From Pelomyxa schiedti (lineage: Eukaryota > Protista > Evosea), in the NCBI GenBank assembly GCA_020536535.1, contig JAHLWZ010000681.1:1-48695 (forward strand): DNA of 48,695 nucleotides. The letters run 5' to 3'. The notes beneath the pieces are model-generated. The model saw only the letters and a list, made by a program, of their open reading frames with translations. It made no database searches and was not told where the DNA came from. The stretch's first letter is position 1. The number at the start of each line of letters is the position of its first letter. The translations under genes and the position numbers were made by a program. Shown piece by piece: positions 500 through 36,421 of the stretch.

Positions 500-1699
500 A
501 TGTTGGTGGAAATTCAATCGGCGTTTATGCCCCCAGCCGCTATCATTAAGGCGATTGAGTCTATTGGAATCTACAAAGTTTGCATCCCCGGTCTTTGGTT
601 TGTTAGAGAATGACAGTTTTTAGGCGAGGCAAAACTACCTCCGGATGTTCATATTGGCCTTCATGGCTGGTGTCTTTATAGCTATCGGTGGAATGACAAG
701 TATTACATTTGGAAAGGGCATCCCGAATTCTGATCCTGGTGCCCAGAAGTTCGCCTATGGGTATTCCAATGATGAAATGTCAAGTTCTCATTTACAACAG
801 AGCAGTATTTCCTGTTGGTCTGATTCTTGTCAGTCTGTGCGGCTCAGAGCTTATCACAGGCAATTTTGCTTGTCTGATTCCTGGCTTGTATAACAGGAAA
901 CTGGCGTGGTACGAGGTGTTGATCGCATGGTTTATTGTTTACTGTGGAAACTTTGTGGGCAGTCTTGCTATGGCTTACTTTTTGGCATATCAAACCGGCT
1001 TGTTCATAAAAGATCCTTGGTTGGCTTCCGTGCAAGCCATGGCCGAGACAAAAGTGAGCATGCGGTTTGGTCAGACATTTCTAAGTGCTATGGGGTGCAA
1101 TTTTCTTGTATGCCTGGCTATCTTTATGGTCACTGCGTCTAAGACAATAGTGTGCAAGGTGTTCGTTATCTGGTTCCCCATTATGGTACTTTCCTTTTAT
1201 GCTTCTTTTTTCCCGTAACAAGCCCGGCAGGCCTTCGCCACCATTGGATTTGAGCATTGTGTTGCAAATATGTTCCTCATTCCCTGTGGGATGCTTTATG
1301 GTGGAAATGTAACATTTGGGCAATTCATATCCTTATTATTCCCCTGCGTCATACCAATTTTCAGTTGCCTTAACTCTGAACCACATAGGTAAAAATATTG
1401 TTCCAGTCACATTGGGTAACGCTTTCGCTGCTATCTTCTTTGTGGCCACAATATACTGGTTCATATGGGGCATGAACCCCAGGACCACCCCAGCACCCCC
1501 CAAACCAGTCGTTACCGTTACTGAGGAACATCACAGCGATGACGACGGCGTAGAGTTGTCTGTCAGGCATCATCACCACCACCATCACCACCACAACAAG
1601 GAACACCACCGAAACCCACGACGCCACACTGACGGAGGGTCAGACCGCTCCTTCTCACGTTCCCCCTCCCCTTCTAACTCTGGGAGTGGCTCATCCTAA
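500..1699 (+). CDS. Formate/nitrite transporter (FNT family), 5 exons, His-rich C-terminal tail
   Basis: Spliced translation gives FILAFMAGVFIAIGG, AVFPVGLILVSLCGSELITGN, GNFVGS, AMGCNFLVCLA, GFEHCVANMF and KNIVPVTLGN, all hallmark FNT motifs. Three GT-AG introns plus one AT-AC intron restore the frame. Start ATG at 500 is approximate. Confidence 0.93.
1327..1384 (+). other. AT-AC U12-type (minor spliceosome) intron in the FNT gene
   Basis: 5' end ATATCCTTA; branch-like TTGCCTTAAC at 1365-1374; 3' end CCAC. Removing these 58 nt joins GQF|IGKNIVPVTLGN in frame. Confidence 0.85.
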
Positions 1700-3029: not shown

Positions 3030-3367
3030 TACAGAGACTCGTTGTTTCCCCTCAACAACCACGTGTTTTTCTGATTTTTTGCAATTTACCACGATACAGA
3101 AACAATCATTTCGGCAGAATTACAACTGCTAAGAACGTAATTTGAGGAATTACAATTGATCAAGTCCTTGGTCTCCCTTGCTTTCAATCCGGCTTCATCG
3201 ATGGTGTCCCGCGTCTCCAGACCCCACCGCATTCAGTGGGTTCTTCGCGTCCGCAGTTATGGGGAAGGAGGTGCTGGGGAGATTGTATTACCATTGGTAC
3301 CCTGGATCTGGTATATCTTCGGAAAAAAAACAGAAATGTACATTTTTATTTTGGTTGTATCTTTTCT

Positions 3368-4797
3368 TCACCAACTGCTGACAATCCCAACACAGGACAC
3401 CATCCCGGCGGCTTCCAAATTTTGGTTCAGCAAGTTGTTGTATTTACCATTGCGCATGTATTCAAGCACTGAGGCCGTTCCCTGATCAGCATACGATGTA
3501 TGTGAGTATGTTGATATCAGTGCTAAATATCTCTTTGGTGATTCGTCAGTTCTTGAAACCGTGGTGCAGTTTGGTTGTTGTAGTTCAGACACTTTGAAAA
3601 ACAGCCGGCCGGGGACTTGCACAGTGTTGAAATAGTGGCGGAGATTGCTCATGCTCATTTGGGGTGTGTATTCGGCTGAGAACCAGACCAATCGCACAAC
3701 GACAGAGATTCCTTCCAGAAAGCCCCAATGTAATTAGTTGGTTACAAACTAATTGGGGAGTTTGTGGTTGGAATTTTACCTGCGGTTATTGTTGTGTAGG
3801 TTACTGACCCCTGCTGAGCTGGTAGTCGAAAAGGGGAGTGCTGATGATGTTGCTGTGGGTACTTTTGATTTTGATTTTGTTGTGGGCTATGTTTTGTAAG
3901 TTTGTTGTTATTGTTGTGGTTGTTGTTGCTGCTGCTGCTGCTGGTGTGGTTGTTACTGATGGGTGTGGTTCTCCATTGGCTGAATAGAGGAGAGGTATGG
4001 TTATTTTGAACAAGTGACAATGCCTCTGAGATTTGGGGTGAAACTATCAGAGCATCTATTTGATCGCAATTCGGAGTGGGTATGGGTATGGGTATGGGTA
4101 TGTTTTTGGGTAAAAATTCCGTGGGCTTTTTCCTCGAAATTCGTGATTGTATTTGAAAAGGTGTGCTCGAAACTATCAAGGTACATAGATCCACAATAAG
4201 CCACACTGATGCCGCGTTCATGTGCACTCTGATTTGAGTTCGTTTGTTCGTTGTTCTTTTGTAGTAGAAAGAGACGGAGCAATTGAAAACCTTGATGAAG
4301 TGCACATTCCCCTTATCTCGAATTTATATTCAGAAACAGGACTGTTATTGGGTAAAGGCGTAGGAGCCCGGTGTGTTGCAGTAACTTTGATTGGTTTTCC
4401 ATATTCACAAATTTTGCATGATATTTCTACTCTTTTTGAGCCATAAGGTATTGTTCAAAAGAATACCGTCTAATGTCTGCCAAGAGCAACATTTTGCCTG
4501 CACACAGCTAGCACAAACCTGCTCATGGGTAATTCCTTCACGTTCTCTCCAATCTTGGCGAAGGAGAAGAGTCATCTAGTAGTTTGCTGTGAGATTCCAC
4601 AACAGAAACAATGTAATGTGAGTGTTACAAAATGTCGTGCATGACAATTCTTCAAATTCGCATCGACACACCTCAGAAGTTGTACGTGAAGATATACGAG
4701 GGGGAACAATGAGGGAAGCTATCAAGGAGGTACCAAGCTGGTCAGGCGAAGTCCCCGTTGCGTCAGAACGCTCCAAGTGGTCCCTCAGATTGGACAT
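3368..4797 (-). CDS. Hypothetical protein, putative CudA-like/Ig-fold DNA-binding domain followed by N/Q/H low-complexity region
   Basis: Exons join via GT-AG introns: MSNLRDH...VCASCVQAK...FEIRGMCTSSR|VHMNAASVWLIVDL..VSSTPFQIQSRISRKK, a low-complexity tract, then GISVVVRLVWF. The 3' end is uncertain and the family is inferred from recalled motif similarity only. Confidence 0.5.
4078..4101 (+). repeat. (GGGTAT)4 tandem repeat
   Basis: Read directly; encodes IPIPIP in the minus-strand gene. Confidence 0.9.
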
Positions 4798-5204
4798 CCC
4801 TTTCCCTTTCTACACCACCAAGACCAACAGGCCTTTGTTTTTGTTTTGTTGTTTGTTAACTTTGCCTTTGTGTTCCTAGTTCGAAAAGGTTTTGTTATGG
4901 TCGTGATCGCAGCACAAAAGAAGAAAAAGGAAACGACGCACGAGGTTCACTCCGCTCGGATCCACGTGATGCGCTTCGGCAGGTTTCAATAACGAAAGTT
5001 ACTGAAAACAAAAAAGATTTACGAGATCCACGATATTCATTCCAGCTAAAAGAAACAAAATCAACACGTCCATTCCTCCTGTGTGATGTCTTTTTCAGTT
5101 CGTTTCATTCTGAGCTGCTCAATCTCTGAGAAGGTGACTCCTCAACAAACGATCAGACAGTCAAAGAGGAAAGATCGTGATTCTTTCTGATAAACAATTT
5201 ACTG

Positions 5205-6107
5205 ATGGCGTGCGAGGGGGCCGTAGTTTCGTGGACAAACCCACCACCAACATTCGAACCACCTCTTGTTAAAGTCGAACAGAGTGAAGCAACGAAAACA
5301 ATTGTACATTGTCCTTCTAGCCTTTTTTTTAACCTTTGTTATTCTTCTCGTTGCTTAGGCACATGAGATGCTCTTAACACTCATTTTTCTTAACTTATTA
5401 GACTTTGCGGAACCCCTTTACAGCTACTTCTGCTCCGGACACTGATTACTGGCAAAGGACACATTACGGGTTCCAGCATGACAATGGCCATTTTTTGCAC
5501 ACTCAACTAAACACTGCATATGTGAGTTCATAGTCCTAACATTACATGATTTCTTATGTTTTCCCTACCGCAGTATCATACGAAAATGCAGCTACATGTG
5601 TCTTGGACACCAAAACATCTTTACGACCAAGCGGGTTTGATGATCAGGGTATCAGCAGATTCGTGGATAAAAGTCTGTGTAAGTGAAGTCCAACGTTCTT
5701 ATCAAATGTCAACTCGTATCCCCCATTTTAGGTTGAAGCCGGCGGTGGAGAGGAGCCCACCAGGTTTCATTCTTTTTGGAAAAAATGTTGTTGCTATTGC
5801 TAACAGGTCCAACAGACTGGGCTGTGTTGTCACGCGAGATGGATTCTCTGACTGGTCAACGCAGGACTTTCCAGCCACCCAGAATGAGATAATGTTCCAG
5901 ATTGAGCGCGAAGGTTCCAGCTTTGTGATATCATGGGCAAAGCATCCAGCCACACCCACGGAACCACCAAAGTGGTTCCAATTGAGGGTTGCTCATCTCC
6001 CCATATCTCCCACTATTCCAGCCTTTTGTGGTCTGTTTTTGTGTGCCCCTAATCTCGCTCCTGGGTTCGCTGCACAATTTCATTCCTTCTCCATCTCAGA
6101 GTACTGA
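5205..6107 (+). CDS. DUF1349 / Ree1-like protein
   Basis: TDYWQRTHYGFQHDNGHF, YDQAGLMIR, WIK, RLGCVVTRDGFSDWS, QLRVAHL and GLFLCAP; GT-AG introns restore the frame. Confidence 0.85.
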
Positions 6108-6179
6108 GGAAACAACTAAATTGTTACGGCTTATCAAAAGCTTTAAATTTTCTTTTAATTTATCAGTTTCATTACTTCC

Positions 6180-6803
6180 ATGAACCAAGAGGAGGGCGGT
6201 TCGTACACAACTCGACCGCCGTTCGAAAAGAAGTTTGTTAGTGACGCACCAAATTGACTACTACTCAGCAGCTTACCTTGCTTGCACAGGTTCAGAAGTT
6301 CTGTCATTGGGCCAGTGCTGCAGGAGTATTTACGGGGAAAACTTACGGGTGCTGTGTACGACCCTGAGAGGACTCCCTCTCTCACAAAAGAAATTTCGGA
6401 TGACATAAAAAATATACTCAAAGGTATGGCGAAGATGTAATGCGGTGTGTGCATTGCTTTAAATACAGGCACATTAATAATATTCTAAATTATCCAACTT
6501 TTATTTTTTAAATTCTCGCAGGATACCCTAAATTGGAGAGGTATAAATATGTAGTTCAGGTCATTATTGGAGAGCAAAGAGGGGAAGGTGTTAAGTATGT
6601 CTGTTTCTATCACTACTGCACCTCAGTGAACATAATTTGCTAGGGTAGCCTGCCGATGCTTCTGGGACTCGGATACAGATGCGTATGCTAAAGAAACTTT
6701 CATAAATGTTGGCTCCCTCTTTTTTTTGGGTTCTTCTGTTAATAACTTCCTAAAGGATTCCATATTTTGTGTAGCCACGGCATATGGTGTATACTACTAC
6801 TAG
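6180..6803 (+). CDS. TCTEX1D2: Tctex1-family dynein light chain, TCTEX1D2/DYNLT2B-like (5 exons; not in the ORF track)
   Basis: Spliced: MNQEEGGSYTTRPPFEKKFRSSVI...ISDDIKNILK..ERYKYVVQVIIGEQRGEGVKVACRCFWDSDTDAYAKETFINDSIFCVATAYGVYYY*. The YKxVVQVxIGEQRGEG and RCFWD motifs are characteristic of TCTEX1D2. Confidence 0.92.
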
Positions 6804-7017
6804 TCTTGTACAAAAACAAAAAAACCTTGCAAAACAATTTCACACTGAAAACCAACGCTCGTATTATAACATTAGCACCAATTTTTCCAGCAAGTTTTGT
6901 TCTGTGATTTTACTGCAAGGTGGACAGTTGTCCAGACAACAAGAAAACCAAACAAACAAAATCCTCTTTTTTTGTCTCTTTTTTGTTTTGTGCAAAATTG
7001 CTATGTAAAGTACAGTT

Positions 7018-10000: not shown

Positions 10001-11570
10001 GTGCAAGACAGGTGCCTTTTCCGTAATATAAGCATTTAGACATTGCATAAACGCCTCCTTTCCCTTGAATGTGTTACCATTCGAGAGGTTCTGTGTTCAA
10101 GTTAACAAGAAGTATAGGAGCATTGAGGTGAAAGTAAACCTGAAGCACTTTCGTTATGAGAATGAGATTTCTTCGAGTTTTTGGAGATGCAGCCTTTCCT
10201 TTTGGAAGAAGGCCATACTGCTCTGGTGAAAAAATCGGAGGGTTAAAGTATCTGTTTGGGTATATAAGTTCATTGTGTAGTACAACAAATGAGAAAACCG
10301 AAGCATGAGGAAACTGCCGACAATGGGGAGGAAGTTGATGTCCGGGTAATACTGCTTTGAAAGTTCGGAAAAGAACAGTGCAATTATCCTGGAACGCGGG
10401 AAAAGGGACTATTAGGAGACCATAGTACGATATGGGTCATTATTATACTTGATTCCTGGAGGCATTTTGTCGATGTTGGAGGTGGATGTGAGCTTGGTCA
10501 GGAAACTTTCAACTTTAGCAAGAAGAAGACTCTTATTTGTTTCAATCTCCTCTGGATTTTCGACCTTACTACAACGAGAAACATTGAGCACAGATAGCAA
10601 TAATAAAAACGGACCTAGGGTCAACTTCATAGGTAAGTTTCCTGTCAGTTATACAAATCTCGTGCAACGTGGGGCCAAGAATATCCGTAAGGTATTTGCT
10701 GCCAACTTTTCCTATGTACAAGTTGAATAATTGCAATGCCAATGTAGGTTTTTTCCTCACTCAGATAAGATTTAATGATTTTCGTGGCAATTGAATTTTC
10801 TCTGAATAAGGAACCAGGGTAGGATGCTGAATGCTGTTCAAATTCCGCTTGAATAAAATAACGAACAAAACTGTGAATTGTCGTTAGTATTTTTTGTGTT
10901 TGGTTAGGAGGAGAGCAGGGATTACGGCAAGGTAGTGGAACGAGCAAACGTCATTGTTAACAAAGAATCTGCAATGTCTTCCCATTGATCTTTATTTTCG
11001 CACAAGTTGAAAAATTGAGGCAGAACGCTTTTTGAGAAACAGGTTAATTACTTCGTAGTATATTTTGACCCATAAGCGTCCTCCCCTCTCAACCCCAAAC
11101 ATTCCCAAAAAAAAAAAACCCACAGGCTCAAACAGGCCCCCACAACAACACGAACAATCCCATAACACACTCCCACTCATCACACGCGCACACCTAGGAC
11201 ACTTTGTGATGAAAAAGTGGAAGATGTCCTGCAGCAAGTCGCTCTCCCTGGGGCTGTACATCAAGTTGCCCTGCTGTTGCTTGTCCACCGTGGTGTCCGG
11301 CACCGTCGACGTCCTCGTCGGCTGGTAGAACACCACCGTGCGTCTCTTGTGGCTCCTCTCCTCCGCGTACGCCGTCGTCCCGCTCGGCGTCGCTGCTGCT
11401 GCCGCCGTTGCCGTCGCCGTCGCCGTGGCTGCGGCTGCTGCTGCTGTCGAGGAGGACGACGACGAAGTGGAAAGGGCCGATGAGGACGGCGACGAAGACG
11501 CCGAGGAGGAGGACGATGTGGGCTGCTGCGTGGTGGTAGATCCAAGGACCGAGGCTGAGGGACTGGACAT
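7018..11570 (-). CDS. RasGAP domain fused to CARMIL-type PH domain and leucine-rich repeats (>20 exons)
   Basis: RasGAP: SLFRENSIATK, LMLR|YFNPPIFSPE, RRNLILITKVLQ|NLSN. PH: KKIILIIGMNRIF. CARMIL linker: CGGFVGTYKAMCNY..LCWDIENLY. LRRs: LTSLSL, IDISDN, LDISHNRFG, IDISGHQFGNNGAIAL, and MPLPVNDI at the end. One junction between GAP and PH is ambiguous. Confidence 0.82.
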
Positions 11571-13338: not shown

Positions 13339-15681
13339 TTAGTTTTGTTTTGCATGTGGGGATAGGTAAAATCGCCACAGCACAATAAAACCAATCACAG
13401 ACAGAACAATGACAACCGCGATTGGCACTACTATTGCTATGATCAGTGCACGGGTGGTGATTCCGTGTGTTGGTGGATAGGTAATATCAGTCCGGTCTAT
13501 GACGTGGTGTGTCATTGAGGTGGATTGATAGCCAGGGGGGGCAAGAGTCTCGAATGCTGAATAGGTTTTGGTTTTGGGTCAAGTGATTACTGTATTTGAG
13601 GAATTGAGAGTGGTACCGAATTCTTGGTACAGGCGGCCTCCTACCCACACGTCGCCGGGCACGCTACTCATGGATGTTACTATGGTAATGTTTTCACTGC
13701 CTATCATTTGGCCTTGGGTGAGATTGACTGTCAGGAATGACTACCACGCAAGGAAATGAGAATAAATTAATGAAAACGGTCAGGGAAAGAGGAATTAACT
13801 GGTCTGGAGAAGCTCACAAAGTCGTAGAAAATCTGATGAAGGCTCCAAGTTGTGTTGAGGGAAATTTTAAACTAACGAAGGTTTTAGTGTGAGTAACTGT
13901 GACGGTTACATACCTGTGGGCCAACAAGCCAATAATTGAAGTCATAGGATGGAGTGGAGGGTGTATAACGGTACGAACAGTTCAGCTTCAACTGAAATTC
14001 GATGACTTCATCCAAATCTTCCACAACAAGGCATGTGTGGTCACCATTCAAAACAGAATCGCTCTCACTTACAGTCTATTTACAAATAAGAATTGTGCAA
14101 TATGACACAGTAACACACGGGTTGGACAAGCGAACAATTTGAAGGAGAAAGGACTTCCAGGGAGCAACTAAAAGGGGACTGTGTTTCACATATTGAGCCC
14201 TGATAATCCTCGGGGCAGGTGCACCAAGTAATATTTACATTTTGGTAGCAATAATTGCTGCAAGGCACCTAAGTGGGCTGTCAAATGATTTCAAAGTAAA
14301 CGGGAGCATACACACTGAAGAGGTTACAGAGGCAGTGCATACATTTGGGTCACACTCTAGCTGGAGAAAAGTTATGATTAAACAATACAAACTTCTGGAA
14401 AATCTCACAGTACCTGCAACGTTTCGCACGTTGTCCATGGCGAATCACAAGTAACCTGGGTAAAATAAATCGCAATAGGAAAAAAAGATAACGCAAATAC
14501 CTCCTTAATTTCACATCCTGTATTATTTATCTGTGTGGTTCCTGACACACTCACAAGTGAGTTGTTACAAAAGACCTATCGATTGATATAAACAGGACTG
14601 AAATATATAGAGCCTAAAAACCTGTTGCTCTGAGCACTTGAAGCCATACGACTGATATCCAAAAGAAGTGTGATCACTGCATTGTATCTTGGGAGGGATA
14701 GATTAGAAAAGATCTTAATGTAAAGTGGGATACCTGAACTGGGTTCGTGGCCAAGCTCCCTCTTCTGTTTGAAAACTGTACTGATCAGAAGACAAATGGG
14801 ATTGGATATCTTACTCTGAGGATTGTACAATTGTTGACTTGGTGTTGCTCACTTAAGTTGACATGTAACTGGTTACATATTAACTGTTTGAATGTGTAAG
14901 AAATCCCCAATATCAAACGGGGGAACAACAGAAAGAACTTCACAAGAATCAGAAAAAAGGAATCTAGCAGTAGTTGAGGTATCTCTTGACACTAGAGAGC
15001 CATTGCAAACCATCTATGCTCTGGTTGTTAGATTATGAAGAAGTATGAACCTAAATTTTTTTAAAAAAAGGATATTCACCTGATCGACATAGCAATATGC
15101 CCCAGAGCAAGAATACTGCAAAAAAAATCTATAAGAACACACTAGCCAAAAAAGGAAAAGGATACCCTGTTCTGTACACTCCACAATTTCACGCCTGGAT
15201 AGCAATCAGGCTGAGTCTCAGTCGAATCGGCGCCACCACCTTGGCTTGCGCCTGCCCCACCCGTGTCCCCGCCTTCACCATTATCATCATCAACACAGTC
15301 TTCATCTTGCTCCGAGTCGCCGTCCACGGTGCGAGTCTTGCGCCCCTGCACCAGCGATGCCAGAGTTGCTTCCCGTGGCCGAGACCGAGACTGCCCCCCA
15401 GCAGCAGCAGCAGCAGGGGAGAAGGATGCCACGGACCTGGCGACCGCGACGGCGGCGCGGGAGGACGACTGGGCCGCGGAGGCCAGGCGCAGCCACGCGG
15501 GGTCGTCCAGCGGGCCCCAGGACGAGGCCGAGCGCCACAGCCATACGCACCCGAGGCAGCACGCGCACAGGCACAAGCACAGGCAGCCGGCGGCCACGGG
15601 GCGGCGCCAGCCCGCTCCCCCCTCCGTCGCCAGGCGGTCGCCGCTGGCCATCGGTGTAGTTGTGGACCCACTCGGCCGCAT
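13339..15681 (-). CDS. Cys-rich membrane protein with EGF-like module and C-terminal transmembrane helix
   Basis: N-terminal hydrophobic segment; repeated xCN-starting exons (MVCNGS, LICNQL, VFCNNS); CTCPEDYQGSICE (EGF-like); C-terminal LIIAIVVPIAVVIVLSVIGFIVLW. Start codon uncertain. Confidence 0.6.
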
Positions 15682-16464
15682 CCTCTTCGCGGTTGTTCGT
15701 GCAGAATGAATGTGATCAGTGATACAGTGGTGGCCAAAGGGCACTCTGGCAATCCCGGAGATGGAGGTGTCCACCCTTGCGGAGTGAGGGAAGTGGGTTT
15801 TGGACAGAGGAAGTGGGCGTGATCCACCACTTGTGTATGTTAAGGGGAAAAAGACTGGTGTTGCTGGTTTTTTGTCCTGAGGCTAACTCAAACATCTGCG
15901 GGAAGGGCAGCTGGACAGGGAGTTGATATTCGCGCTGACGAGAATTCGGGCCACATCGGTTAGAACTCCTGCCTTTGGAAGATATCCTCCTGTTTGCGCC
16001 TGTCACCGAGGAAAAAGCAACTGTGAATTTTGGTTACACAAACGACAACAAGTTTCATCAACTTTTGAAGCAACAAAACCGGGAAAAGCGCAACAAAAAC
16101 ACAAAAACAAACAAAATAAAAAAAACCGAGCAGTACGATGTCGAAGAGGGGTGGTGCGTCGCAGATCTTTTTGTTTCATTTATTTCTCTTATTTCCATTG
16201 GCTGGCTGTTGTCATCACTCATTTGTTGCACTTGTCACCCACAACTCATCTGGCATTAGAAAAAGCTCCGGCGACTGAAAAAGACGCCAAAACAGCGACG
16301 ACTACTACGACTTCCAGTTTGTGCCAAAATAGAAACGAACACAACTACACTTTGTGTCAAACCAAGCACTCGCAAGACATGTGCGACGCAACCGCTCGCC
16401 GCCAACACATTCACTTGGCACACTCTTTTTATCACATCGCTCTTGTGGACTATAATCTGACTAA

Positions 16465-17937
16465 ATGACAGCGTCAGCTTCAGACAAGAAGGGCGCCAAG
16501 GCCCCGCCTGCTGACTCTAAGCCAGAAAAGGCAGACGCCAAGGCTGATTCCAAGGTTGGCGACAATTTACCAAAGAATTCGCTCTTCTTGCTACACTTCA
16601 CGTGTTCCGTATTGTTTTAAAAATAAATAGGCCAAGAAAGATGATGCTAAGCCAGCAAAAGAACCTGCCACAAAGTCGTCATCCAAAACTGACAAGACCA
16701 CTGGGAAATCTGGCAAAAAAGCCGATAGTGATAGTGGAAGTGACAAGGAGTCAAGTGAGAAGTCTAAGTCAACTAAAAAGCCAGCCAAGTCCGACAAAAC
16801 AGAGAAGGGGAAGGACAAAGCCGACAAAGCAGAAAAAGGTGATGGGGAAAAGGCTGCACCCAAAGGAAGGGGAAGAGGCGGTGCGCAATCTTTTTTTTTT
16901 TTCTTTCTCCTCTCATCTTTCTCTAGGTAAAAAGAAGAAACCAGCTGGTCCCCCAAAGCCCAAAGTAAAACTAACCGAGGAGCAAAAGAGAGAGCAGAAA
17001 AAAAAGCACCGAGAGAAGGAGATTGCAAGGCTGAAAGAGGCTCAAGGTAACCTGTTGCAAAATGTTACTGAAGGCCGTATTCCTAAGCCCGTTCGCAAGG
17101 TTAACTTCATTCAACCCAATCATGCCTAACCTCCAAAAATAGTTGAGTCTGTGCCCCAGTAAGGAAAATCCTCAGGGATACATTGATGTCACAGTAGATA
17201 GCGTAATTGTTCTCCCATTGTTTTTTCTTCGCCCTAAGAAAATGTAGAAGGACTTACCAAGGTCCCCACCAAGAAAGACGAAGCCAAGGACAAGGAAAGC
17301 AAAGAAACACCACAAACACTCCTCCTCCAGTGAAGAAGAGGAAAAACCCAAGAGTAAGAAGCACCATCACCACCACCATCACAAGAAGAGTGATGACGAG
17401 GAGGAAGAAGATAAACCCGCCAGCAAAGCAGATAGTGAGGCACTCGAACCCGAGAAGCCCGAAGGAGCGGCTTCAAAGGGGAAGACAAAAAAACCAAAGA
17501 AGGAGGACGCTCCCGAGGAAGCTCCGGAAAAGGAAAGTTCAGAGGAAGCTCCCGCTAAACCTGAAAAACCCAAATCGGCTGAGGCTGCCCCAGCTGACAA
17601 AACTGTAAAGGATGCTCCCAAGGCAGACAAGGCCGATAAAGCAGATAAGGCGGACACAAAAGCTGATAAAGCAGATAAAGCAGACAAGGCGGACACAAAA
17701 GCAGACAAGGCTGACACAAAAGCAGACAAGGCGGACACAAAAGCAGACAAGACTGACAAAGCCGACAAATCAGACAAAGCCGATAAAGCTGATAAGTCAG
17801 ATAAAGTACTTCCAGAGAAGCGAAAGGAACCGGCGAAGGCCCCAGAGAAGTCCGACAAGCCAGAGCCACCCAAAGAGGCCGCACCCGAGGAAGAAGCTAA
17901 ACCCGGCGCTGCTAAGAAGCCAAGAACCAAGTCCTGA
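16465..17937 (+). CDS. Lys/Ala/Asp/Glu-rich low-complexity protein with ADK repeats
   Basis: ATG at 16465 (MTASASDKKGAK); four GT-AG introns; the final exon reads ...KHHHHHHKKSDDEEEED...(ADK/ADTK)n...KKPRTKS*. This frame is missing from the ORF track. Confidence 0.75.
17623..17805 (+). repeat. Coding tandem repeat GCnGAyAAr / GCGGACACAAAA (ADK, ADTK units)
   Basis: Read directly: gcagacaag gccgataaa gcagataag gcggacacaaaa and further copies. Confidence 0.9.
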
Positions 17938-18250
17938 AGGAACTCACAAACATACACAAAAAGCAGCCACCCACTAGTAGTAGTAGAAAAGAACAACAAG
18001 GTGTAAGTTAACGCCCCCCTTTGTGTACAGGAAGGCAAAGGGGAAAAAAAAACAATTGTCTTTTACTCTTTGTTTTGTTCCGCAGAGCTACTGGTGCCCC
18101 TCCCCTGTCATCTCTGAATCTTTGTTCTAAGAATCGAATTCGATTTGATTTTGATTTTAGCTTTCAACGATCTCTACTAACAGCCAGCTTCAAAGCCGGT
18201 AAAAAAGAAAAAAGAATAAACCAACAAGGGCGCGTCATCCATCACGACCA

Positions 18251-20983
18251 ATGCAACCGTACACGAGCGACCCACAACCTGTCCCACCCGTGGGGTCTGA
18301 GACCGCTGCCCCAGTCCAAAACGCAGCGCCCGTGGTGCCTTACTTCGGGGTGCCTCTAGGGCGAGTTATGGGAGCGGACGGGGCCCTCCCCGAGCCTGTC
18401 GTGCAAGTCCTCTACGTGCTTGAGTGTTGTGTTCCTGCTCAGGAAGATCTGTTCGATCTGTCAGCAAACACACCCAACTTGGCCGAACACCCCAAACTCA
18501 AGGAATTACGTCATGCATTTGACACTGGTGTGGAAAATCCCTTGGCTGAGGTTCTAATTCTTACCTTCTCTTCAACCCCTGCCAATTCCACGTTTATTAA
18601 TGAATATCTTGGTTTCTCTCTCTCTTTTTTTTTTTCTCCCTCCCTCTGTGAATATGGCAGGAAGGTGATCCACAAGTAGTTGCAGCACTTCTTGTTTTGT
18701 ACCTTCGCATGCTGCCACATCCAGTAATACCTCCAAAGTACTACTTTACTTATCTGAGGCTTTCAGCAATTCCATCTCCTTGGGCAAGATTTAGGCAAAT
18801 GAGAGTTTTGACAAACAAACTGCCTACCATTGCGAAAGTACTTACACTCCGGTTGCTCAACTTCTTGCACTCCACTGAATTGGACAAGAATAAACTAGCA
18901 GGAGTCTTCTCCAAGTACATGCTGCGTCCAACTTTGGAACTGCCTCCTGAGCACATTCCAATCCCGCAACCAGTCAACAGAATTATTGCTGACATGATAG
19001 AGCAAGCTGACTATCTTTCCCTTTCTATGGAAGAGCCTATTGTTACTGACCCTGCACCCCCAGCTGAACCTCCTAATGAGTTCAAGCTTGTTGGATTTGC
19101 CATGTACGATTTTGATGGTCAGGGTGCGTAATAACTTTCTTGGGTTAATTCATGCCAAATGCATCCAGGTGCTTCTGGTGTTCTTTCTTTCCATGCAGGT
19201 GATCGTATACAATTGATCAATGCTTATCAAGATGATTGGCTAGAGGGCATAATTAACGGTTCTCCTGGATTTGTGCCATCTGGATATATAGAACTTATTC
19301 CAATGTCTCCCCCTAATCCCACTGGACGTGGTGGCAAAGTGCAGGGTACCCCTCCCCCTATGCCCACTGCCATCCCCCCTCCAGTGTCCATACCATCGGT
19401 AGAACCACCAATTTTACCCCCGGTCTCTCCCTCACTATCTCCTACCCCAACACAGCTCACTCCAGCTCCAATTCAACCCACTCCTACAGTAATAGAGGAA
19501 CCCCCAGCTACGTTAATTCCATCGGAACCTATTCCATTACCACCGGACCTCCCAGCCATTCCACTACCTCCTCCCATGCCCATCTTCCCTCCAATCGATA
19601 TCCCAATTGACATTCCCAATTTACCAGCTCCAATGGCCCCAGCGCCTCCTGCACCAACTCCAAAATCTGCACCCGCCCAGGCACCTACCCAAACTTCGCA
19701 AGCACCAACGCCAACTCCACAGGCACCAACACCAACTCCACAATCATCAACACCCCACTATCAACCACCTCCACCACAACCAGTGTATAATCCTACAACA
19801 TCAACTTATCAAACATCATCACAACCCACTCAATATCAGTCATACCCAAGTACCACACAATTATCTTCAACGCCACCACAACAGCAAGTGCAGGTGCAGG
19901 TGCAAGTGCAAGTTCAGGTCCAACAGCCCCAACAACAGCAACAAGGGGTACCTCCACCGCAACTCACTCAGCCACTGAATCAATCACAGTCCCTTACAAT
20001 TGAATATCCCCATGCTCAAGTGTCTACAAGTGCAGCCGACGCTGTATGTAACTTTTGACAACTTTCCCTCCAACTAAAACTTCCATACAAGAATTATGAG
20101 CCCCTTCCTTCAAAGGCGCCTCCTCCAGTGAGCCACAAGACACCCGGCAAAGTTCCAAATCCCGATGAGTGTGGGGAGAGTAATCACATCGTAGTAGTTG
20201 TTGGAAGTGGTGGTGTGGGTATGTTTGAGTGTTTTTATACTTGCAGTTATTAATTCTTCTAGGAAAATCCGCTCTTACAATTGCCTTTGTACAACATAGT
20301 TTTGTAGAAACATACGACCCGGTATATGTTCCATCGGTTCTTTTTCTCATCAACTTATACACTACTACAGACAATTGAGGTATTGAGCACAGTTTCATTG
20401 AAGTTATTGATCGAACTTCCAATTAGGACTCTTACCGACAGCAAGTCGTTGTAGATGACGCATCAAGTGTTTTGGATATTCTTGATACCGCTGGTACATT
20501 TCTCGTTTTATCTTGCTATTTTTTTTTTTTTAACCAAATTCTCCACTAGGTCAGGAAGAATTCAGTGCTATGAGGTAGAAGGCTTATTTTCCCCTTTCTC
20601 CCATAATTACTCGCTAACACCGTTAACCAAGGGACAAATACATGCATACGGGGCACGGCTTCATCCTCGTTTTCGCGCTGACTTCAGCCTCGTCGTTCCA
20701 CGAAATTCCCGATCTGCACACCCACATCCTCCAAGTCAAAGACGCGGACTTTGTGCCCCTCGTTCTCGTTGGAAACAAGTGCGATCTGTACGACCAAATA
20801 GAGGTTAGCATAGCCGACGCGACCAAGTTCGCCCAGTCGATCAACGCGCCCTTCTTCAAATCCAGTGCCAAGCTAAACATCAACGTGGATGAGAGTTTCC
20901 ACCAACTTGTGCGCATCATTCGCCAGCACCGCGCCAAACAAAACACTGGCAAGCCAAAGAGAAAGCTATGCCGACTACTCTGA
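18251..20983 (+). CDS. Multidomain protein: RhoGAP-like (no Arg finger) - SH3 - Pro/Gln-rich linker - Ras GTPase with CAAX
   Basis: RhoGAP: FGVPLG..LPEPV..EDLFD..VAALLVLYLRMLPHPVIP. SH3: AMYDFDGQGASGVLSFHAGD..DWLEG..GFVPSGYI. Ras: GSGGVGKS, YDPTIEDSY, DTAGQEEF, NKCD, SAK, C-terminal CRLL*. All joined by GT-AG introns. Confidence 0.88.
19885..19920 (+). repeat. (CARGTN)6 coding repeat giving (QV)6
   Basis: caagtg caggtg caggtg caagtg caagtt caggtc, in the frame of ORF 19159..20058. Confidence 0.85.
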
Positions 20984-29028: not shown

Positions 29029-32000
29029 ATGGACATGCAGCGGCAGTCGAGCTCTACGGGAGTTCGCTCGGTAACTAAGGAGATCTCATCGTGTGGAAAT
29101 ACGTCTGAACTTCGAGCGCCGGACGTGCCGATGCAAACGACCCAGCCGAGTTGTGGTTCCTCGCAGTTGCCATCGAGAAGTAGTGCCACTACCAACACTT
29201 CGACGATGCAAGTTGTTCCGAGTTCAAACACTGGCAAACGGGACCTCACTGCCGGTAATTTTGACCAAGAAGGTTGAAATAGCTTAGTAAATACTCGCGC
29301 CCACCGTTTTCGTGCAGGTCTACTGTTCTTGATTTTGCATTATCTTCATGGATTGGGACCGCCTCCTTCCAACACTGGGGCAAATGAACCCAGTAGGGAC
29401 ACACTGAGTGAGGTTGTTCAACTTTTAACCTCCGTTCTGGAAGGAAGTGGGTACCTCCCAAAGAAACATTGGTGGGACAAGACACACTTATTGTCATATC
29501 AAGAAATTGTACCAATAGCATTCATTATTTCTTCCATTTCTCACTCCCGCAAAAAACAAAAAAAGGCTAAAACCAATTCCCATATTCCCAGCAACTATCT
29601 AGAAAGGATCATTGAAAAACTTCAAGAAACACATACCACCAACTCCAGCTCCCCACATCCACATAAAGTTCACTCAGTTCTTGCTCATGGCCGAATGTCC
29701 CTTGTTCCTCTGCAATCAAGTCAACACCCACGAGTAGTCCCCCCGCCAATAAGTATGTGAGGAAACTCTTGACAGAATTACAACTTCCTCTTTTGAACAG
29801 ATAAGTTTCTTGTATACAGCCAAATTGGTGGAATTAACAGAAGAAGGCAAAACACTTCGAAACAAGTCCACTCTTTAGTGGCAGCAAAGTACAAGAAAGT
29901 GAGATAACTTCATTCCTTAGTATCCTCTCACTCTCTTAGCTTATTTCTTTCTGTGGGCACCGAGCTCCCATTTATTGCCTGAAATTTGACCCCTGTGGAA
30001 CAAGAATTTTCACTGTAAGTTATTTCTTGTACAACTAAATGGAAGTTCAAGAAACTCAAAATACAACAGGGTGCTGATGACTTTTTGATTAAAGTGTGGA
30101 ATGTTTCAACAGGATCCCTTGTAAAGTCACTACGAGGGCACATAGTATGCTGCTCAAAGTCCCTTTTCATCTCAGAAGTTTGTAGGATGTCATATTAGAT
30201 ATGGACATCAATTGGGATGGAACTCTTCTTGTGACAGTATCTAAGGATCGCATATTACGAGTTTGGGATTGCACGCCTTCAGGCCAATATCCTTGCATAT
30301 ATTGCTGCCGTTCATCTTCTCCCTATAGTAGCGTTCTATGGCGCCCTCCTCCTATAATTCCCAGTTCCTGTGGTGTGACTGGTACTCCCTTATCGTGGCC
30401 TTCAAATTCTACATTCCCAGTGATGATAGCAGCTTGCTCAAATCGTGGGCAGTCTGAATTAATTCAAGTTGGAACCTTCCGCCTCAATTCATTTCCTTCA
30501 CCAGCTTCATTATCCCACAATTGCAGTATTGCTCTTCCTGCAATGACAGGGGCTGAATGCGTACATGAATGGCAACAACCTGGTTCTGTTACTGTAGTCA
30601 CCCCACAGTCCAAGAGATCCTCTCCCACCCACATAAGCTTTAGCTGGGACGGACTGTACTTACTTATTGCTGGTTCTCCTGTTTCGATTGCCAATCTACA
30701 AAATGGCGTAAATGTAATACAGACAGTATATGAGGTCTCACAATCTGAGTGTCAAACAAAAAGAGGTGATTCGATATCAGTGTGCAAGGCTGGTGCCAAA
30801 CACAACTTCCTACCTAAAGATTCCAACCATTAAACAGTTCGCACACCACGCGTACAAATTTCTTATTGGCTATACCTCTGGTGAGATGTTGGTTTACCAG
30901 CTAGATTCGAAGACAGGATCTTTTATTGGAAAGACATGTTTGTTTCCTATTTGGTGTTTTGTATCACTGTGTTGTGGAAGCTGTTCGCCAAAGCGGAAAC
31001 ATCTATCTGAATCTAATTCTATAATATCCAGTGAGCCCGCTTCCTACAGTTTCTGTAAGCCAAAGGCGCTCCCCTGCAGCATCTTTCTCCAAGAAATCGA
31101 AAGGCTTGAGGGCTTTGTACGCCATATGGAACTCTGATGATAGTTATGTAATCTCGTCTATGTCAGACAAGTCAATAATTGTACATTCCTGAAACTTCTT
31201 ATTTAACATATAACTAAAAGAAAGGTCTGGAGTGCGTTCACAGGAGAAATCCTTAATGTGTTACAGGGACACTTCGGTGACTCCTATGTATTAGATCATC
31301 ATCCACTGTTCCCAGAGCAGTTTATAAGTGGTGCCTACGGTTGGTATTTTCTTTGGCTATTCTTCGAAATAACTTCTAGCAGATGGAAAGATCGTTTTAT
31401 GGGATCTATTCCAAAAAAAACCCTTGAGGGAATGGTCAAGGTGATCATATTTCTGGAGTTTCTCCTTTAACATAAAAAGAAATGTAGATTCAGTGAAGTT
31501 CGAGATTTATGATGGTTCTTTTTCAAGAGATGGTATCCAATCCAGAACTTTTTTTTTCTCCCACCAGCTACAGGCAACTTCTTCGCTGTGTCTGACAAAT
31601 TTGGAATGGTTAGTATTTTTTGATATATATGTCTCATTGGGGGTGGAAAAAAGATAACAATCTATGGGTTTTCGGATATTGATAAGTACAAGAGAACCCC
31701 ACGGCAGCAATTTTTGGCAGGTGAACATGAACTCGTTGAGTTCGATGAAAACTATCAACCATTTGACCGTAATACCCATGTATCCTGTGCTCTCCATTGG
31801 TCTTATTACTCATCTGCTTAGCTCGCTGTGTGGGATTCACCACTTGGCGTCCTTGTTGACCTTGACCTAAAACCTTATAAAATTCCACTTCTTCGTACGC
31901 AATAACAATAGTTGCTGTATTCTTAAATATTTGAAGAGTCATATGGTAATAGCGATGAAGCAGCAACAGCAAGGCTCATTCTTACGTTGCGTACAAAATA

Positions 32001-34236
32001 TTACCGTGTCTATCTCAACTAGTCTTAGGATTGCCCTTAGTCCGGAAGAGATTCTCGATCCTTCTGACGATGAAGAAGTTGGTTTTAGCGTGTTAAATTT
32101 GATCTTAACACCCTTAAAAAGCCCTGGGCCCCAAGCCGAAGTACTAGGGCAGTAGATTACAGTACAGCAACAGTTTCTTCTACGGAAAACAACAATACTA
32201 GTCAACCCCAAGAACCTTCACCGGCTTTAAGGCCCACTCGCCTTTCACGGAGACTTAGAGGGCAACTACCTCTCCAAGCTGGGTTGGATGACAATGATGA
32301 CATATGTGTTGTAAGCAGCAGCGCGGATGAGGCTGTGGAAGACTTCCACATAGAGGGTGTTCCAAACGAAAACACATCGAGTGATGGGGAGAGCTTAGGT
32401 TCTGTTTCTCAAGGCTCAGAGGGAGGAGGTATGGTGACAGCAACGAGAAGTCACTACAAACTGAGGGATAGACATGCAGCTAGAAACAATGCCAGACACA
32501 AAAAGAAAGAATCAGAGGGGGTTGACACTATATGCACTCCAGAAGTAGAGGGTGCTAGTACTGTGCATACTAGCTCCACAGATACTACAGGTAAACTCGA
32601 AATGCAACTGAACACTCAGATAAAAATTAAAAGAAAATTTAACCCATCCTTTTTTCCCTCCCTTAGGCCACAATCTCAGACCAAGAAGGAAACAAAAGCG
32701 ATCCCTGGATCAATTAGCTCATTATTCACCACCTTTGGACACTACATCAACACAGTTGGAGCCAGCACCCACTCCCCCCCTTGACACACCTGGTTGCGCA
32801 ACAGTAGATCCACCTATTTGCACAACGATACAGACAAGCATAAATAACACTCCGTGCACCCCACAGCTGAATAACGTCACCACAGATGCCAACACTAAGG
32901 TATTAAACACTGCAGCCCTTGCACCATCAATCCAATCCACAAGTAGTTCTACAAAACTTAGGTAAAACGTATACTTATGGCCAAGCCATCTAATTTTTTG
33001 ATGACCAGATTAATTTTACCACTCCTGCCTGCTGCTCCAGATTTGCCTTCATGTACCACGAAGACATCAGACCCATTGCGCGCTTTTACCCCAACTTTAT
33101 CTGTTGTCGAGCCTCCAACCACACTCCCATCACTCTCGAGTTTACTCCAGCAAATTCAGCAGCCTAACCGTTTTGGATTGTCGTTTCCTACAATTCAAAA
33201 GATTGAACCATCTCTAGGAACCAAACTCGGTTTCGGAAATGCAGCCATAGCCCCCTTAAGAAATGAAAAGCCACACCAAGCCCAGTTAAACAACACTCCC
33301 ATACGAAATGAAAAACCACACCCAATACAGTTCATACCCCCACCCCCAGTAAGACCACCCGTTCTGCCTCCCACAGAACGCCTTCCTAACAGCCAAGGGA
33401 GTGGAATTACATACCCCAACATATCAGATATATCAGAATACGGAACTTCAAGCCCAGCAATCCTCGAGCCAGAGTATTCACCTTCCCCCCTTCGTGCTTC
33501 AAGTTCAGAAGAAGCCCTAAAAGACAGGACTCACAGGTAATATGCTTCAAAGTCATTTTACACCTAAAACCTTCGTAGTCCATCCCCTGAGAGGCCACCA
33601 ATATCACCTACCTGCCCAGTGGTTGAAAGTGACTCAGATGAGAGTTCAAATGATTCATTTGATGACCTTCGACCAAAACCAAAGCTCACTAGAACATCAG
33701 GTAATTCTTTTAGGAATATTTGAAGATTTCTTTACACTCCCCAGGTTCTCGGGATGTGTCAACCTCACATAGTGCCCTCAAAATTGTCATTCGGCCACAA
33801 CCAAACGCAGGTCAATCCTCTGCACACACACGGCCCCTTGGTCCTCCTGCAAATTTCACCAGAAAGGCACCCCAATCGTACCTCCTGCGCCCCCGTACGC
33901 GACGCTCCTGTTTTGAGCATGCCGAGAACCCGGACATAGAGACCGACATTAAACCACATGGGGAAGATAACCCCACAGACACAGTAGATGATGGAGAGTA
34001 CTCTCCCTCAAACCGTTCACACAAAAAGGAAACCACAAGCAGCCATTACAGTAGCAGTGCCAACGAATACACAAGCAACAGTGAAGATGACTACGACCAA
34101 CACAACAGACCCATCAGAAAGCCACAACAAGACACTGGACACAGTTACAACACAAGATTGAGACCAAAGGTACACAATCTATCCTGCACTGTCCTATCAT
34201 CTCTCTTAATCTCGACCACAGAGAAGGCACCCATGA
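29029..34236 (+). CDS. BRWD/PHIP-like WD40 repeat protein with long low-complexity C-terminus
   Basis: N-terminal LLFLILHYL..GP / LPKKHWW..SYQE resembles the BRWD N-terminus; GHRAPIYCLKFD..IFTGADDFLIKVW..LRGH; GHFGDSYVLDHHP. No bromodomain recognised. Last exon approximate. Confidence 0.85.
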
Positions 34237-34351: not shown

Positions 34352-36421
34352 TTACTCCACTTTATCTTGGTTGTTTGGTGGGGTGGCTGAATTGGCATCA
34401 GTCCGCTGAGCCTTATTGCCGTTTGCATCCAGGTGTAGTATGCGAGCTGGTGAGACCAGCTGCAGGCCTGCAATAGCTACAAGCGGAAGTAAGGCCTGTA
34501 ATAAAAAGAGTAAGGTTTTTTAAGGACTCACAAAGGGTGGTGGAGGCAACGTACCACAAACCAAAGTGAACGCCAGATTCTCAAGGAAGGACCCAGTTCA
34601 AGAAGAATGAAAGGAGAAAACGCGAAGCCAATGTATAGCCCTAGCAGTACAGCACAGGCCAAGTCGTAGACGGGCTTCCATCTTAGCCATATTGCTACTG
34701 GTCTTATAGTCCTCCTATTCTGGGGTGAGGTTCGTGCAATTGTGTGTATGGCTACCTTAGAAGTCTGCCAAGGTATTGAAGCATAGCGGTATATGCAAAT
34801 GACAAGTAGTAGCCAGGATACACCCCATGCCAAAAAGCACTTAGCATGAATGTCTTATGAATGAGTTAAACACAAGTGGGCACTTGTAAGAAAACAATAC
34901 CCAAAATGAGGATATGGCTCCACTGTGCCCATTAGAAGTCAATCGCAAGTAGCAGTAATTCTTTAGCCAGCAGGCAGTCGAAGCATTCCATTTCTCGGCA
35001 AGGATATGTGTGGACTGCGCGGTTTCCGTCTAAATTTCGTTGTGAGTAGTAAAACGGACGAAGAGTTTCTCACCTCCCAGAAGTGGTTGTTCGTGATTCT
35101 ATCCCAAGATTTTACCTCACCAGTTGAGGTGTATCCGTTAAATCCAAAACCTGACGCAACAAAAGCACCTTCAGCCAGCCACCATCCTATATACAACCTA
35201 GCCACTGCTTAGCGATTGATTAGTTAGCAAAATTTTACCTTGCTCTGTAGCAAAGTACCATGAGATACAGTATTACAACTTTTATTGGAAATACTTTGTC
35301 AAAGAAACTCTGATAGTGAAGCAAGCTGTGTTTTTTTTAATTGTGTAAAACTATTGGGAACCAATACCTTGGAGGGAAAAGATATGTAAGAGCGAGGAAC
35401 GGGGCACAGCACAATGCTCTAAGGAAGGCCTGTTGTATTTTTTTTTTAGTAAAAACCTTGTAAAGTAGTGGTTTGAAATACTCGGAATGCAGCTGCCTGT
35501 GTGGAAGGAATTTGGGGATTTTTATCGTCATCATGTTTCCTAACAAAGTGAGAGGTGTAAAAGTGTTGGTCCATACTTGAAGAGGGATAGGTTTATAAAG
35601 GCAACATAGTCCTTAATTTCAAATGCAGGGCCACCAAGGAATCCAGGGAAGAAAAAGATGAAGCCATAAAACTCAAGAAGTGTTGGCATATGCAATAGTG
35701 CGTGGTCTTGCCAATACTGATACTTCAGTTTCTTGCCCTGCAGATTTTTTTTTTTTTTTTAAAGATGCATTTAGCGTTATTGATAGCTCACCATCTTGAT
35801 AGCATTCCCATCACTCAAGTTGAAAGCATATGACATTAATTTGATAGTTACAATCATTTGAGGAGCTAACAAGGATTTAGTAAGGGTTGAATTGTTCATG
35901 AATACCAGTGAAGTCAAGAGCCCACACAAGGTACCCTGTGTAAGACATATTTAGTTGCTTTCTGCTATTTGTTTAATTGTCGTCATACAGTTCCACATTC
36001 TATAGAAGTGACTGCAAGTCATATAGGCAATAGAAAATATGGAAACAGCAGTTGGAATGATATTGGGTGGCAAAACTGAACACTGTGCACAGTAAATTCT
36101 TAAACACCAGAGGAGAAAAAGGCAACCATGATGTATACAACGGTCGAAGAAAAGAAGGCATGAAACCATCCAAACGGTCCCAACAACACAATTGAGGTGA
36201 GCACTCCAAAAAAGATCTGGTCTCGTAAGGTCACAAGCCGAGGGCCAAAAATGAAGGGGAAGAGGAAAAAAGCACAGGCAAACCGAGTACAAGTTCCTTA
36301 TAGTTGGGTTGCGTATATGAGAATGCACAAATGCCAGAGGATACGCAGCCATCACAGACAAGAACCCAAGGACCTGGTCGCGCGGCGCCTTTGCAATCAA
36401 CGCAGAGATCGTGTCAAACAT
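34352..36421 (-). CDS. MBOAT lysophospholipid acyltransferase (ALE1/LPCAT3-like)
   Basis: YIGWWLAEGAFVASGFGFNG, WDRITN, WNASTACWLK, SAFWHGVYPGYY (catalytic His); multiple TM segments. Confidence 0.92.

Follow-up and report, generated by a model that had tools for sequence, protein, structure and literature searches.

A putative U12-type AT-AC intron in a formate/nitrite transporter gene of Pelomyxa

Introduction

Near the beginning of the stretch of Pelomyxa DNA analysed here (48,695 nucleotides, referred to below as the window), the reading frame of a formate/nitrite transporter (FNT) gene is interrupted by a short segment that begins with AT and ends with AC. Is this segment an intron, which spliceosome would remove it, and how old is the site at which it lies? 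Minor introns have already been published for the genus. That is, 90 of them were predicted in Pelomyxa schiedti, relatively many among amoebozoans (Larue & Roy 2023, PMC10639083), so that the FNT intron is less new than the preliminary description of this DNA had assumed. In Mastigamoeba balamuthi and Entamoeba, both the minor snRNAs and the minor-specific proteins are reportedly missing (PMC8136499). In the present study, we analyzed the FNT gene, its splice signals, and its homologues.

Structure of the FNT gene and its product

We modelled the gene as five exons on the forward strand. The first modelled coding exon lies at 500-577, with an ATG at 500. The in-frame sequence upstream of this ATG (455-499, SKTTQATPAAPPAPP, within the region 404-499) resembles the N-terminus of the P. 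schiedti protein, and the 5' end of our model is therefore uncertain; translation may really begin further upstream, with an ATG at 404 and a short, possibly GC-AG intron that ends at 454. Intron 1 (578-623; GT-AG, 46 nt, phase 0) occupies a site that is also used at the two loci compared below, an orthologous locus on P. schiedti contig JAHLWZ010000953.1 (L003) and a metagenome contig (L001). Exon 2 (624-760, 137 nt) corresponds to positions 15-56 of the Pfam profile PF01226 and is followed by intron 2 (761-800; GT-AG, 40 nt, phase 2). Exon 3 (801-1185, 385 nt) corresponds to positions 59-185 of the profile with an E value of 1e-39 and is followed by intron 3 (1186-1230; GT-AG, 45 nt, phase 0). 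Exon 4 (1231-1326, 96 nt) covers positions 186-214, carries the conserved FEHC motif and ends in ..GNVTFGQF. The AT-AC segment at 1327-1384 (58 nt, phase 0) is modelled as intron 4, of the U12 type, from its motifs, the frame and the fit to homologues. Exon 5 (1385-1699) begins as IGKNIVPVTLGN.., encodes the last transmembrane helix and a His-rich tail, and terminates with the stop codon TAA at 1697-1699.

The product of this model has 336 residues. Exons 2-5 match PF01226 in the order of the profile, which places the protein in the FNT family. The profile is continuous across the join of exons 4 and 5, since its positions 217-240 match exon 5 from the third residue (that is, the profile resumes at about 215). 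Furthermore, FEHCVANM, which contains the central His of the FEH motif, and IVPVTLGN, which belongs to the PVTLGN helix, were aligned with all homologues. The protein resembles the pentameric anion channels FocA, NirC and PfFNT, and among solved structures Vibrio FocA (3KLY), LCIA (9V2A) and PfFNT (6VQQ) come nearest to it. Compared with these channels, the window FNT adds a long His- and Ser-rich C-terminal tail, which is also found in L003. In itself the protein is a normal FNT. Formate transport is its presumed function, and this would fit the metabolism of P. schiedti, which includes pyruvate formate-lyase (PMC10579272).

The two tails share a His-rich run followed by a Ser/Arg-rich portion (1565-1600 in the window and 11450-11600 in L003). 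The GC content of the coding DNA in these tails is very different between the two genes.

Splice signals of the probable fourth intron

The preliminary description had reported a 58-nt segment with a U12-like start, a branch motif and a CCAC end, and direct reading of the window sequence at 1327-1384 of the forward strand bore out each of these points. The termini are AT at 1327-1328 and AC at 1383-1384. The 5' splice site at 1327-1335 reads ATATCCTTA, and the extended U12-type signal [A/G]TATCCTT starts exactly at the first base of the intron. The branch-point sequence lies at 1365-1374 of the same strand and reads TTGCCTTAAC; within it, 1367-1374 is GCCTTAAC, which conforms to TCCTTRAY. The motif is followed directly by the final ten bases of the intron, TCTGAACCAC at 1375-1384, and so ends exactly 10 nt short of the end of the segment. 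The candidate branch adenosine is at 1372/1373, 11-12 nt from the last base of the intron, and the bases after the branch motif form no polypyrimidine tract.

Exon 4 finishes in phase 0 at 1326 (..GGG CAA TTC, encoding G Q F), and exon 5 opens at 1385 with ATA GGT AAA (I G K). When the segment is kept, the frame shifts and a stop codon is reached. Because ATA stands at both ends of the intron, five registers of excision yield the identical mRNA. Only one of these five equivalent registers combines AT-AC ends with ATATCCTT at the first base.

We next considered how often such a signal would occur by chance. RTATCCTT by itself is not enriched in the window, where 5 matches were found against 2.3 expected. 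In contrast, a composite signal, defined as the 5' splice site, CCTTRAY, 7-14 nt and YAS, is expected only 0.07 times over the two strands of the entire window, as estimated from 2000 first-order Markov simulations. The composite signal at 1327-1384 has both of its ends exactly on the junction that is fixed by homology. Such a coincidence is well beyond chance, and we therefore do not regard the signal as a chance event.

In order to compare this excision with others, we enumerated all in-frame AT-AC, GT-AG and GC-AG excisions around the site that leave the downstream frame open, which gave 68 candidates. Removal of 1327-1384 was the only one of the 68 that produced GQF|IGKNIVPVTLGN with a gapless match to 22 FNT homologues, bacterial FNTs among them; the joined product reads GQF|IGKN. 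The alignment of homologues, the enumeration of excisions and the Pfam profile all agree with the earlier claim that removal of the segment restores the expected FNT sequence.

Could the true splice be a conventional one, with the U12-like motifs present by coincidence? The GT-AG alternative named in the preliminary description, 1309-1388, did not hold, because it is 80 nt long and does not preserve the frame (the length of the resulting coding sequence leaves a remainder of 2 on division by 3). The GT-AG option that is in frame is 1301-1388, which removes ten residues (GNVTFGQFIG), and a GC-AG option, 1346-1388, puts ISLLFPC in place of IG. Both of these excisions keep KNIVPVTLGN, and TTTTCAG occurs inside the segment at 1358-1364. 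However, the ten residues lost by 1301-1388 are conserved in all 22 aligned homologues, and none of the homologues has an insertion where 1346-1388 would add five residues. In addition, a matching donor, be it GT or GC, is absent from this register of the L003 orthologue, whereas ATATCCTT is kept there. A conventional splice at either of these positions is, in our judgement, extremely improbable.

Another reading is that an AT-AC intron with the boundaries 1327-1384 is removed by the major, U2-dependent spliceosome. AT-AC introns of the U2 type are known, but they are rare, and they do not have the ATATCCTT and CCTTAAC consensus, both elements of which are perfect or nearly perfect in 1327-1384. 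The U12-like distance of 11-12 nt between branch and 3' end and the missing polypyrimidine tract also argue against removal by the major spliceosome, which we consider very improbable.

U12 introns favour phase 0 least, and 58 nt is short for an intron of this class; both properties count against the U12 reading. Nevertheless, all sequence hallmarks of the AT-AC U12 class are present, as the preliminary description had proposed, and a U12-like intron is found at the same site in the orthologue L003. We therefore think it highly likely that the segment at 1327-1384 is a true AT-AC intron of the U12 (minor-spliceosome) type, the fourth of the FNT gene. That it is excised in RNA, and that its excision depends on the minor spliceosome, are what we infer from these features.

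From the established U12 pathway, splicing of this intron may be pictured as follows. The U11/U12 di-snRNP would bind ATATCCTTA and GCCTTAAC together, and at the 5' splice site U6atac would then take over from U11. The branch adenosine at 1372/1373 would attack position 1327. Distance from the branch would determine the 3' site, CAC|A, which lies 11-12 nt downstream; with a choice made in this way, AC in the window and AA in L003 would both be tolerated. Splicing would join ..GQF to IGKN.. and in this way restore the last transmembrane helix of the channel. The further suggestion of the preliminary description, that the intron could gate expression of this channel, is speculative, and we saw no sign of such regulation.

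Comparison with the P. schiedti orthologue

The best protein match of the window FNT was KAH3743933.1, annotated as 'formate transporter [Pelomyxa schiedti]', with 90% identity over residues 2-236 of our model, that is, up to the junction. The next-best matches were two JGI proteins with about 62% identity, followed by two M. balamuthi proteins of EukProt. The window is syntenic with L003. In both, the FNT gene follows the end of a RING gene, a DSPc phosphatase gene of opposite orientation comes next, and a RasGAP gene lies farther along. Between the FNT exons of the two loci the nucleotide identity is 77-83%, and the lengths of the introns differ.

At the same phase-0 site, ..GQF|, L003 has an intron of 113 nt (11107-11219, corresponding to about 15925-16037 of the record). 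Its opening bases, ATATCCTTG, include the ATATCCTT start seen in the window, and after the intron the coding sequence continues as ATAGGCAAG.., which encodes IGKNLVPVTMGN. The intron closes, within 11200-11219, with TCCTTTAC and ten further bases, 18 in all. This motif is in register with the branch-point sequence of the window, the spacing to the 3' end is the same, and the motif is off the consensus by one base. The first eight bases of the intron and the CCTT.AC core are conserved in register between the window and L003, and the remainder of the intron could not be aligned. Thus, the splice signals have been conserved in the orthologue despite divergence of the intron body.

The terminus of the L003 intron is AA, and we read this intron as AT-AA. 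An AC end lies four bases after the branch motif and is in frame as well; we rejected it because it would add two residues that are absent from the homologues and because its distance to the branch motif is too short. AT-AA is the most frequent of the non-canonical endings that minor introns have in animals and in plants (PMC10639083).

The annotated P. schiedti protein KAH3743933.1 ends in ..GQF ISLNQHS.., and the residues after GQF are the translation of ATATCCTT and of what follows it. The protein stops at a TAG that spans the true junction (L003 11107-11223, about 15925-16041 of the record). The annotated introns of P. schiedti are all GT-AG or GC-AG, plus one GT-GG (PMC8887013). We read KAH3743933.1 as a read-through model that is without the last transmembrane helix and the His-rich tail, which an annotation with introns of these kinds only would explain. 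This model was built with transcript data, and the intron kept in it could reflect retained-intron transcripts, beyond the filter of the pipeline alone.

That GenBank keeps the orthologous segment might also be taken to mean that the segment is not removed at all, so that the gene is a frameshifted pseudogene or a truncated protein is the normal product. However, the downstream exon is open and conserved for more than 100 codons in both the window and L003, including the last transmembrane helix and the His-rich tail. The two inserts are unlike in length (58 and 113 nt) and in sequence while the splice signals are retained, and AT-AC and AT-AA introns had no place in the P. schiedti annotation. 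We therefore hold it to be extremely unlikely that the segment stays in the messenger as the normal state.

In the region between the DSPc phosphatase and RasGAP genes, the synteny of the two loci is broken (3100-7000 in the window and 13100-19800 in L003). The window has there, among others, an open reading frame with a DUF1349 domain at 5556-6104, and L003 has a gene of 707 residues and a cyclin gene.

History of the intron site

The preliminary description had suggested that the FNT intron was gained as a U12 intron in this lineage. As the intron is common to the window and L003, it dates back at least to the ancestor of the two. Further evidence came from L001 (ENA metagenome contig, ERZ21831265 ctg80910l; GC 39%), which encodes an FNT homologue with 61% identity. 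All four intron sites are common to the window and L001. The window, L003 and L001 agree in the lengths of exon 3 (385 nt) and exon 4 (96 nt), from which it follows that they share the intron sites. At the site of the AT-AC intron, L001 has a GT-AG intron of 38 nt (4386-4423). Its GTGCGT.. start, CTAAT-like branch and ..CAGTAG end mark it as U2-type. The M. balamuthi model g11666 (P0002, EukProt) ends in ..PDF VWPLLL where the Pelomyxa intron sits, and as judged from this protein tail alone it probably runs on into an intron that starts GT.. at this position. With an intron at the same place in L001, we judge that the site is older than Pelomyxa. The suggested lineage-specific gain was not borne out: the same phase-0 site carries a U2-type GT-AG intron in L001 and probably an intron in g11666.

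In a quick maximum-likelihood tree, the window and P. schiedti proteins were paired (support 100), with L001 as their sister (SH-aLRT 85). Together these three group with the pair of Mastigamoeba proteins and the two JGI proteins, and the branching among the three archamoebal groups is without resolution. The archamoebal FNTs fall inside a well-supported clade (99) of 18 long proteins, of which at least one other member is eukaryotic and intronless. We do not claim an origin of the FNT gene by lateral transfer, as the archamoebal proteins share this clade with another eukaryote. P0156 has an E2 enzyme and a CDC20-like WD40 protein as its neighbours. Two short FNT matches, P0151 and P0025, are bacterial fragments that adjoin formate dehydrogenase and were uninformative on introns.

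Considering the U2-type intron of L001, the most likely history is that an older U12 intron was kept in Pelomyxa and converted to the U2 type in its relatives, the reverse direction being less probable. The two kinds of argument on the ancestral type point in opposite ways. That is, parsimony with two U2-type outgroups favours a change from U2 to U12, whereas known biology favours a change from U12 to U2.

The alternative is that an intron with these boundaries arose in the Pelomyxa lineage, either by a switch from U2 to U12 or by fresh insertion of a U12 intron. In its favour, L001, the nearest non-Pelomyxa homologue with DNA, has a U2-type intron at the site, the tail of g11666 looks as if it ran into a GT.. 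intron, and a U2-type ancestor is the simpler assumption for two such outgroups; for Physarum, likewise an amoebozoan, massive gain of U12 introns has moreover been documented. The shared intron site excludes fresh insertion. Against a switch, the direction commonly documented is from U12 to U2 (PMC10639083). M. balamuthi is without a minor spliceosome (PMC8136499), and therefore any ancestral U12 intron there had to be converted or lost. Furthermore, the Mastigamoeba state is taken from a protein tail only, and the order of the three archamoebal groups is not settled by the tree. An origin within the Pelomyxa lineage is thus unlikely, and retention of an older U12 intron is the history that we prefer.

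Relation to known minor splicing systems

The FNT intron would require a working minor spliceosome in Pelomyxa, which would agree with the published minor introns of P. schiedti (PMC10639083). Those 90 introns come from the same genus-level lineage and belong to the same intron class as 1327-1384. The set was drawn from an annotation that holds only GT-AG and GC-AG introns, and for this reason an AT-AC/AT-AA class, including the intron at 11107-11219 of L003, is probably missing there. The true number of minor introns is therefore probably higher than the published 90.

With the canonical AT-AC U12 introns of animals and plants, 1327-1384 shares ATATCCTT, CCTTAAC at 10-12 nt from the end, the terminal AC and the absence of a polypyrimidine tract. 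It differs from them in being much shorter (58 nt), in lying in phase 0 and in being a predicted intron. Its host also differs, since it is an FNT channel gene and not a classic conserved gene with a minor intron.

In Physarum polycephalum, 5' sites of the form RTATCYTT and frequent non-canonical 3' ends such as AT-AA have been described; its branch motif is transformed to TTTGA, its U12 snRNA has co-evolved, and such introns number more than 20,000 (Larue, Elias & Roy, 10.1101/2020.10.12.336362). Physarum resembles the organism of the window in being an amoebozoan with short introns and 5' sites of the RTATCYTT type. In contrast to Physarum, intron 4 has the classical CCTTAAC, and U12-like sites are not enriched in the window. 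A Physarum source for this DNA, suggested by its short introns and U12 motifs, was rejected on account of the TTTGA branch of Physarum and the synteny with P. schiedti. The classical motif shows that Pelomyxa, judged by this intron, has not followed the route that Physarum took with its branch motif. The minor introns of Blastocystis are 42 bp on average, mostly AT-AC and enriched in phase 0 (PMC10639083). They are thus like 1327-1384 in being very short, AT-AC and phase 0, but they occur in an unrelated lineage, a stramenopile, with hundreds of minor introns per genome.

A wider speculation is that Pelomyxa itself creates U12-type introns or converts others to this type, in the manner of Physarum but on a far smaller scale. 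The FNT intron would then be a U2-to-U12 switch at a pre-existing site, and a sizeable AT-AC/AT-AA class would have been missed by annotations, within Archamoebae whose other sequenced members are without a minor spliceosome. We consider this distinctly unlikely.

The FNT intron adds a clean AT-AC minor intron with comparative support to Pelomyxa, a genus among relatives that lack the minor spliceosome (Mastigamoeba, Entamoeba). It also presents one and the same site that would be U12-type in Pelomyxa and U2-type in a related archamoeba. The practical consequence concerns annotation: because no AT-AC or AT-AA introns were admitted for P. schiedti, the model KAH3743933.1 breaks off ahead of the last transmembrane helix. 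Knowledge of how minor splicing works is left unchanged by this intron.

Searches for transcripts, snRNAs and further U12-like sites

A spliced Pelomyxa FNT product was not found in the protein collection when exon 3, exon 5 and the Mastigamoeba homologue were used as queries. One search of the metagenome contigs with a degenerate pattern of the spliced junction gave no match. The pattern TTYGGNMARTTYATATCCTT proved too loose for the same contigs, as none of the 120 loci that it returned encoded an FNT by tblastn. Rfam models, applied at the gathering threshold and with E values up to 1, detected no snRNA in the window, minor snRNAs included, and no gene for the latter would be expected in 48 kb.

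No second U12 intron was confirmed among the other RTATCCTT sites of the window. The ATATCCTT at 30287-30294 of the forward strand lies inside a long open WD40 (BRWD1-like) frame; it looks exonic and was set aside as a chance match. The site at 15068 of the reverse strand, with ATATCCTT at 15075, is placed 4 nt into a likely U2-type GT-AG intron (GTGAAT..ATCTAACAACCAG) that has a CTAAC branch. At 15158 of the same strand, GTATCCTT..TTGCAG (15165-15116) is a possible GT-AG intron with a U12-like 5' site, and a clear branch motif is absent. For the RTATCCTT at 35000 of the reverse strand, supporting context was absent.

The two reverse-strand sites within 15068-15165 are 90 nt apart and lie at the 3' end of a gene. 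Strong strand skews were also seen in the window at 16000-20000 and 32000-34000, with an AT skew of 0.39 at 16-18 kb and a GC skew of -0.28 at 18-20 kb. These skewed regions adjoin the RhoGAP and SH3 open reading frames and are probably low-complexity coding sequence.
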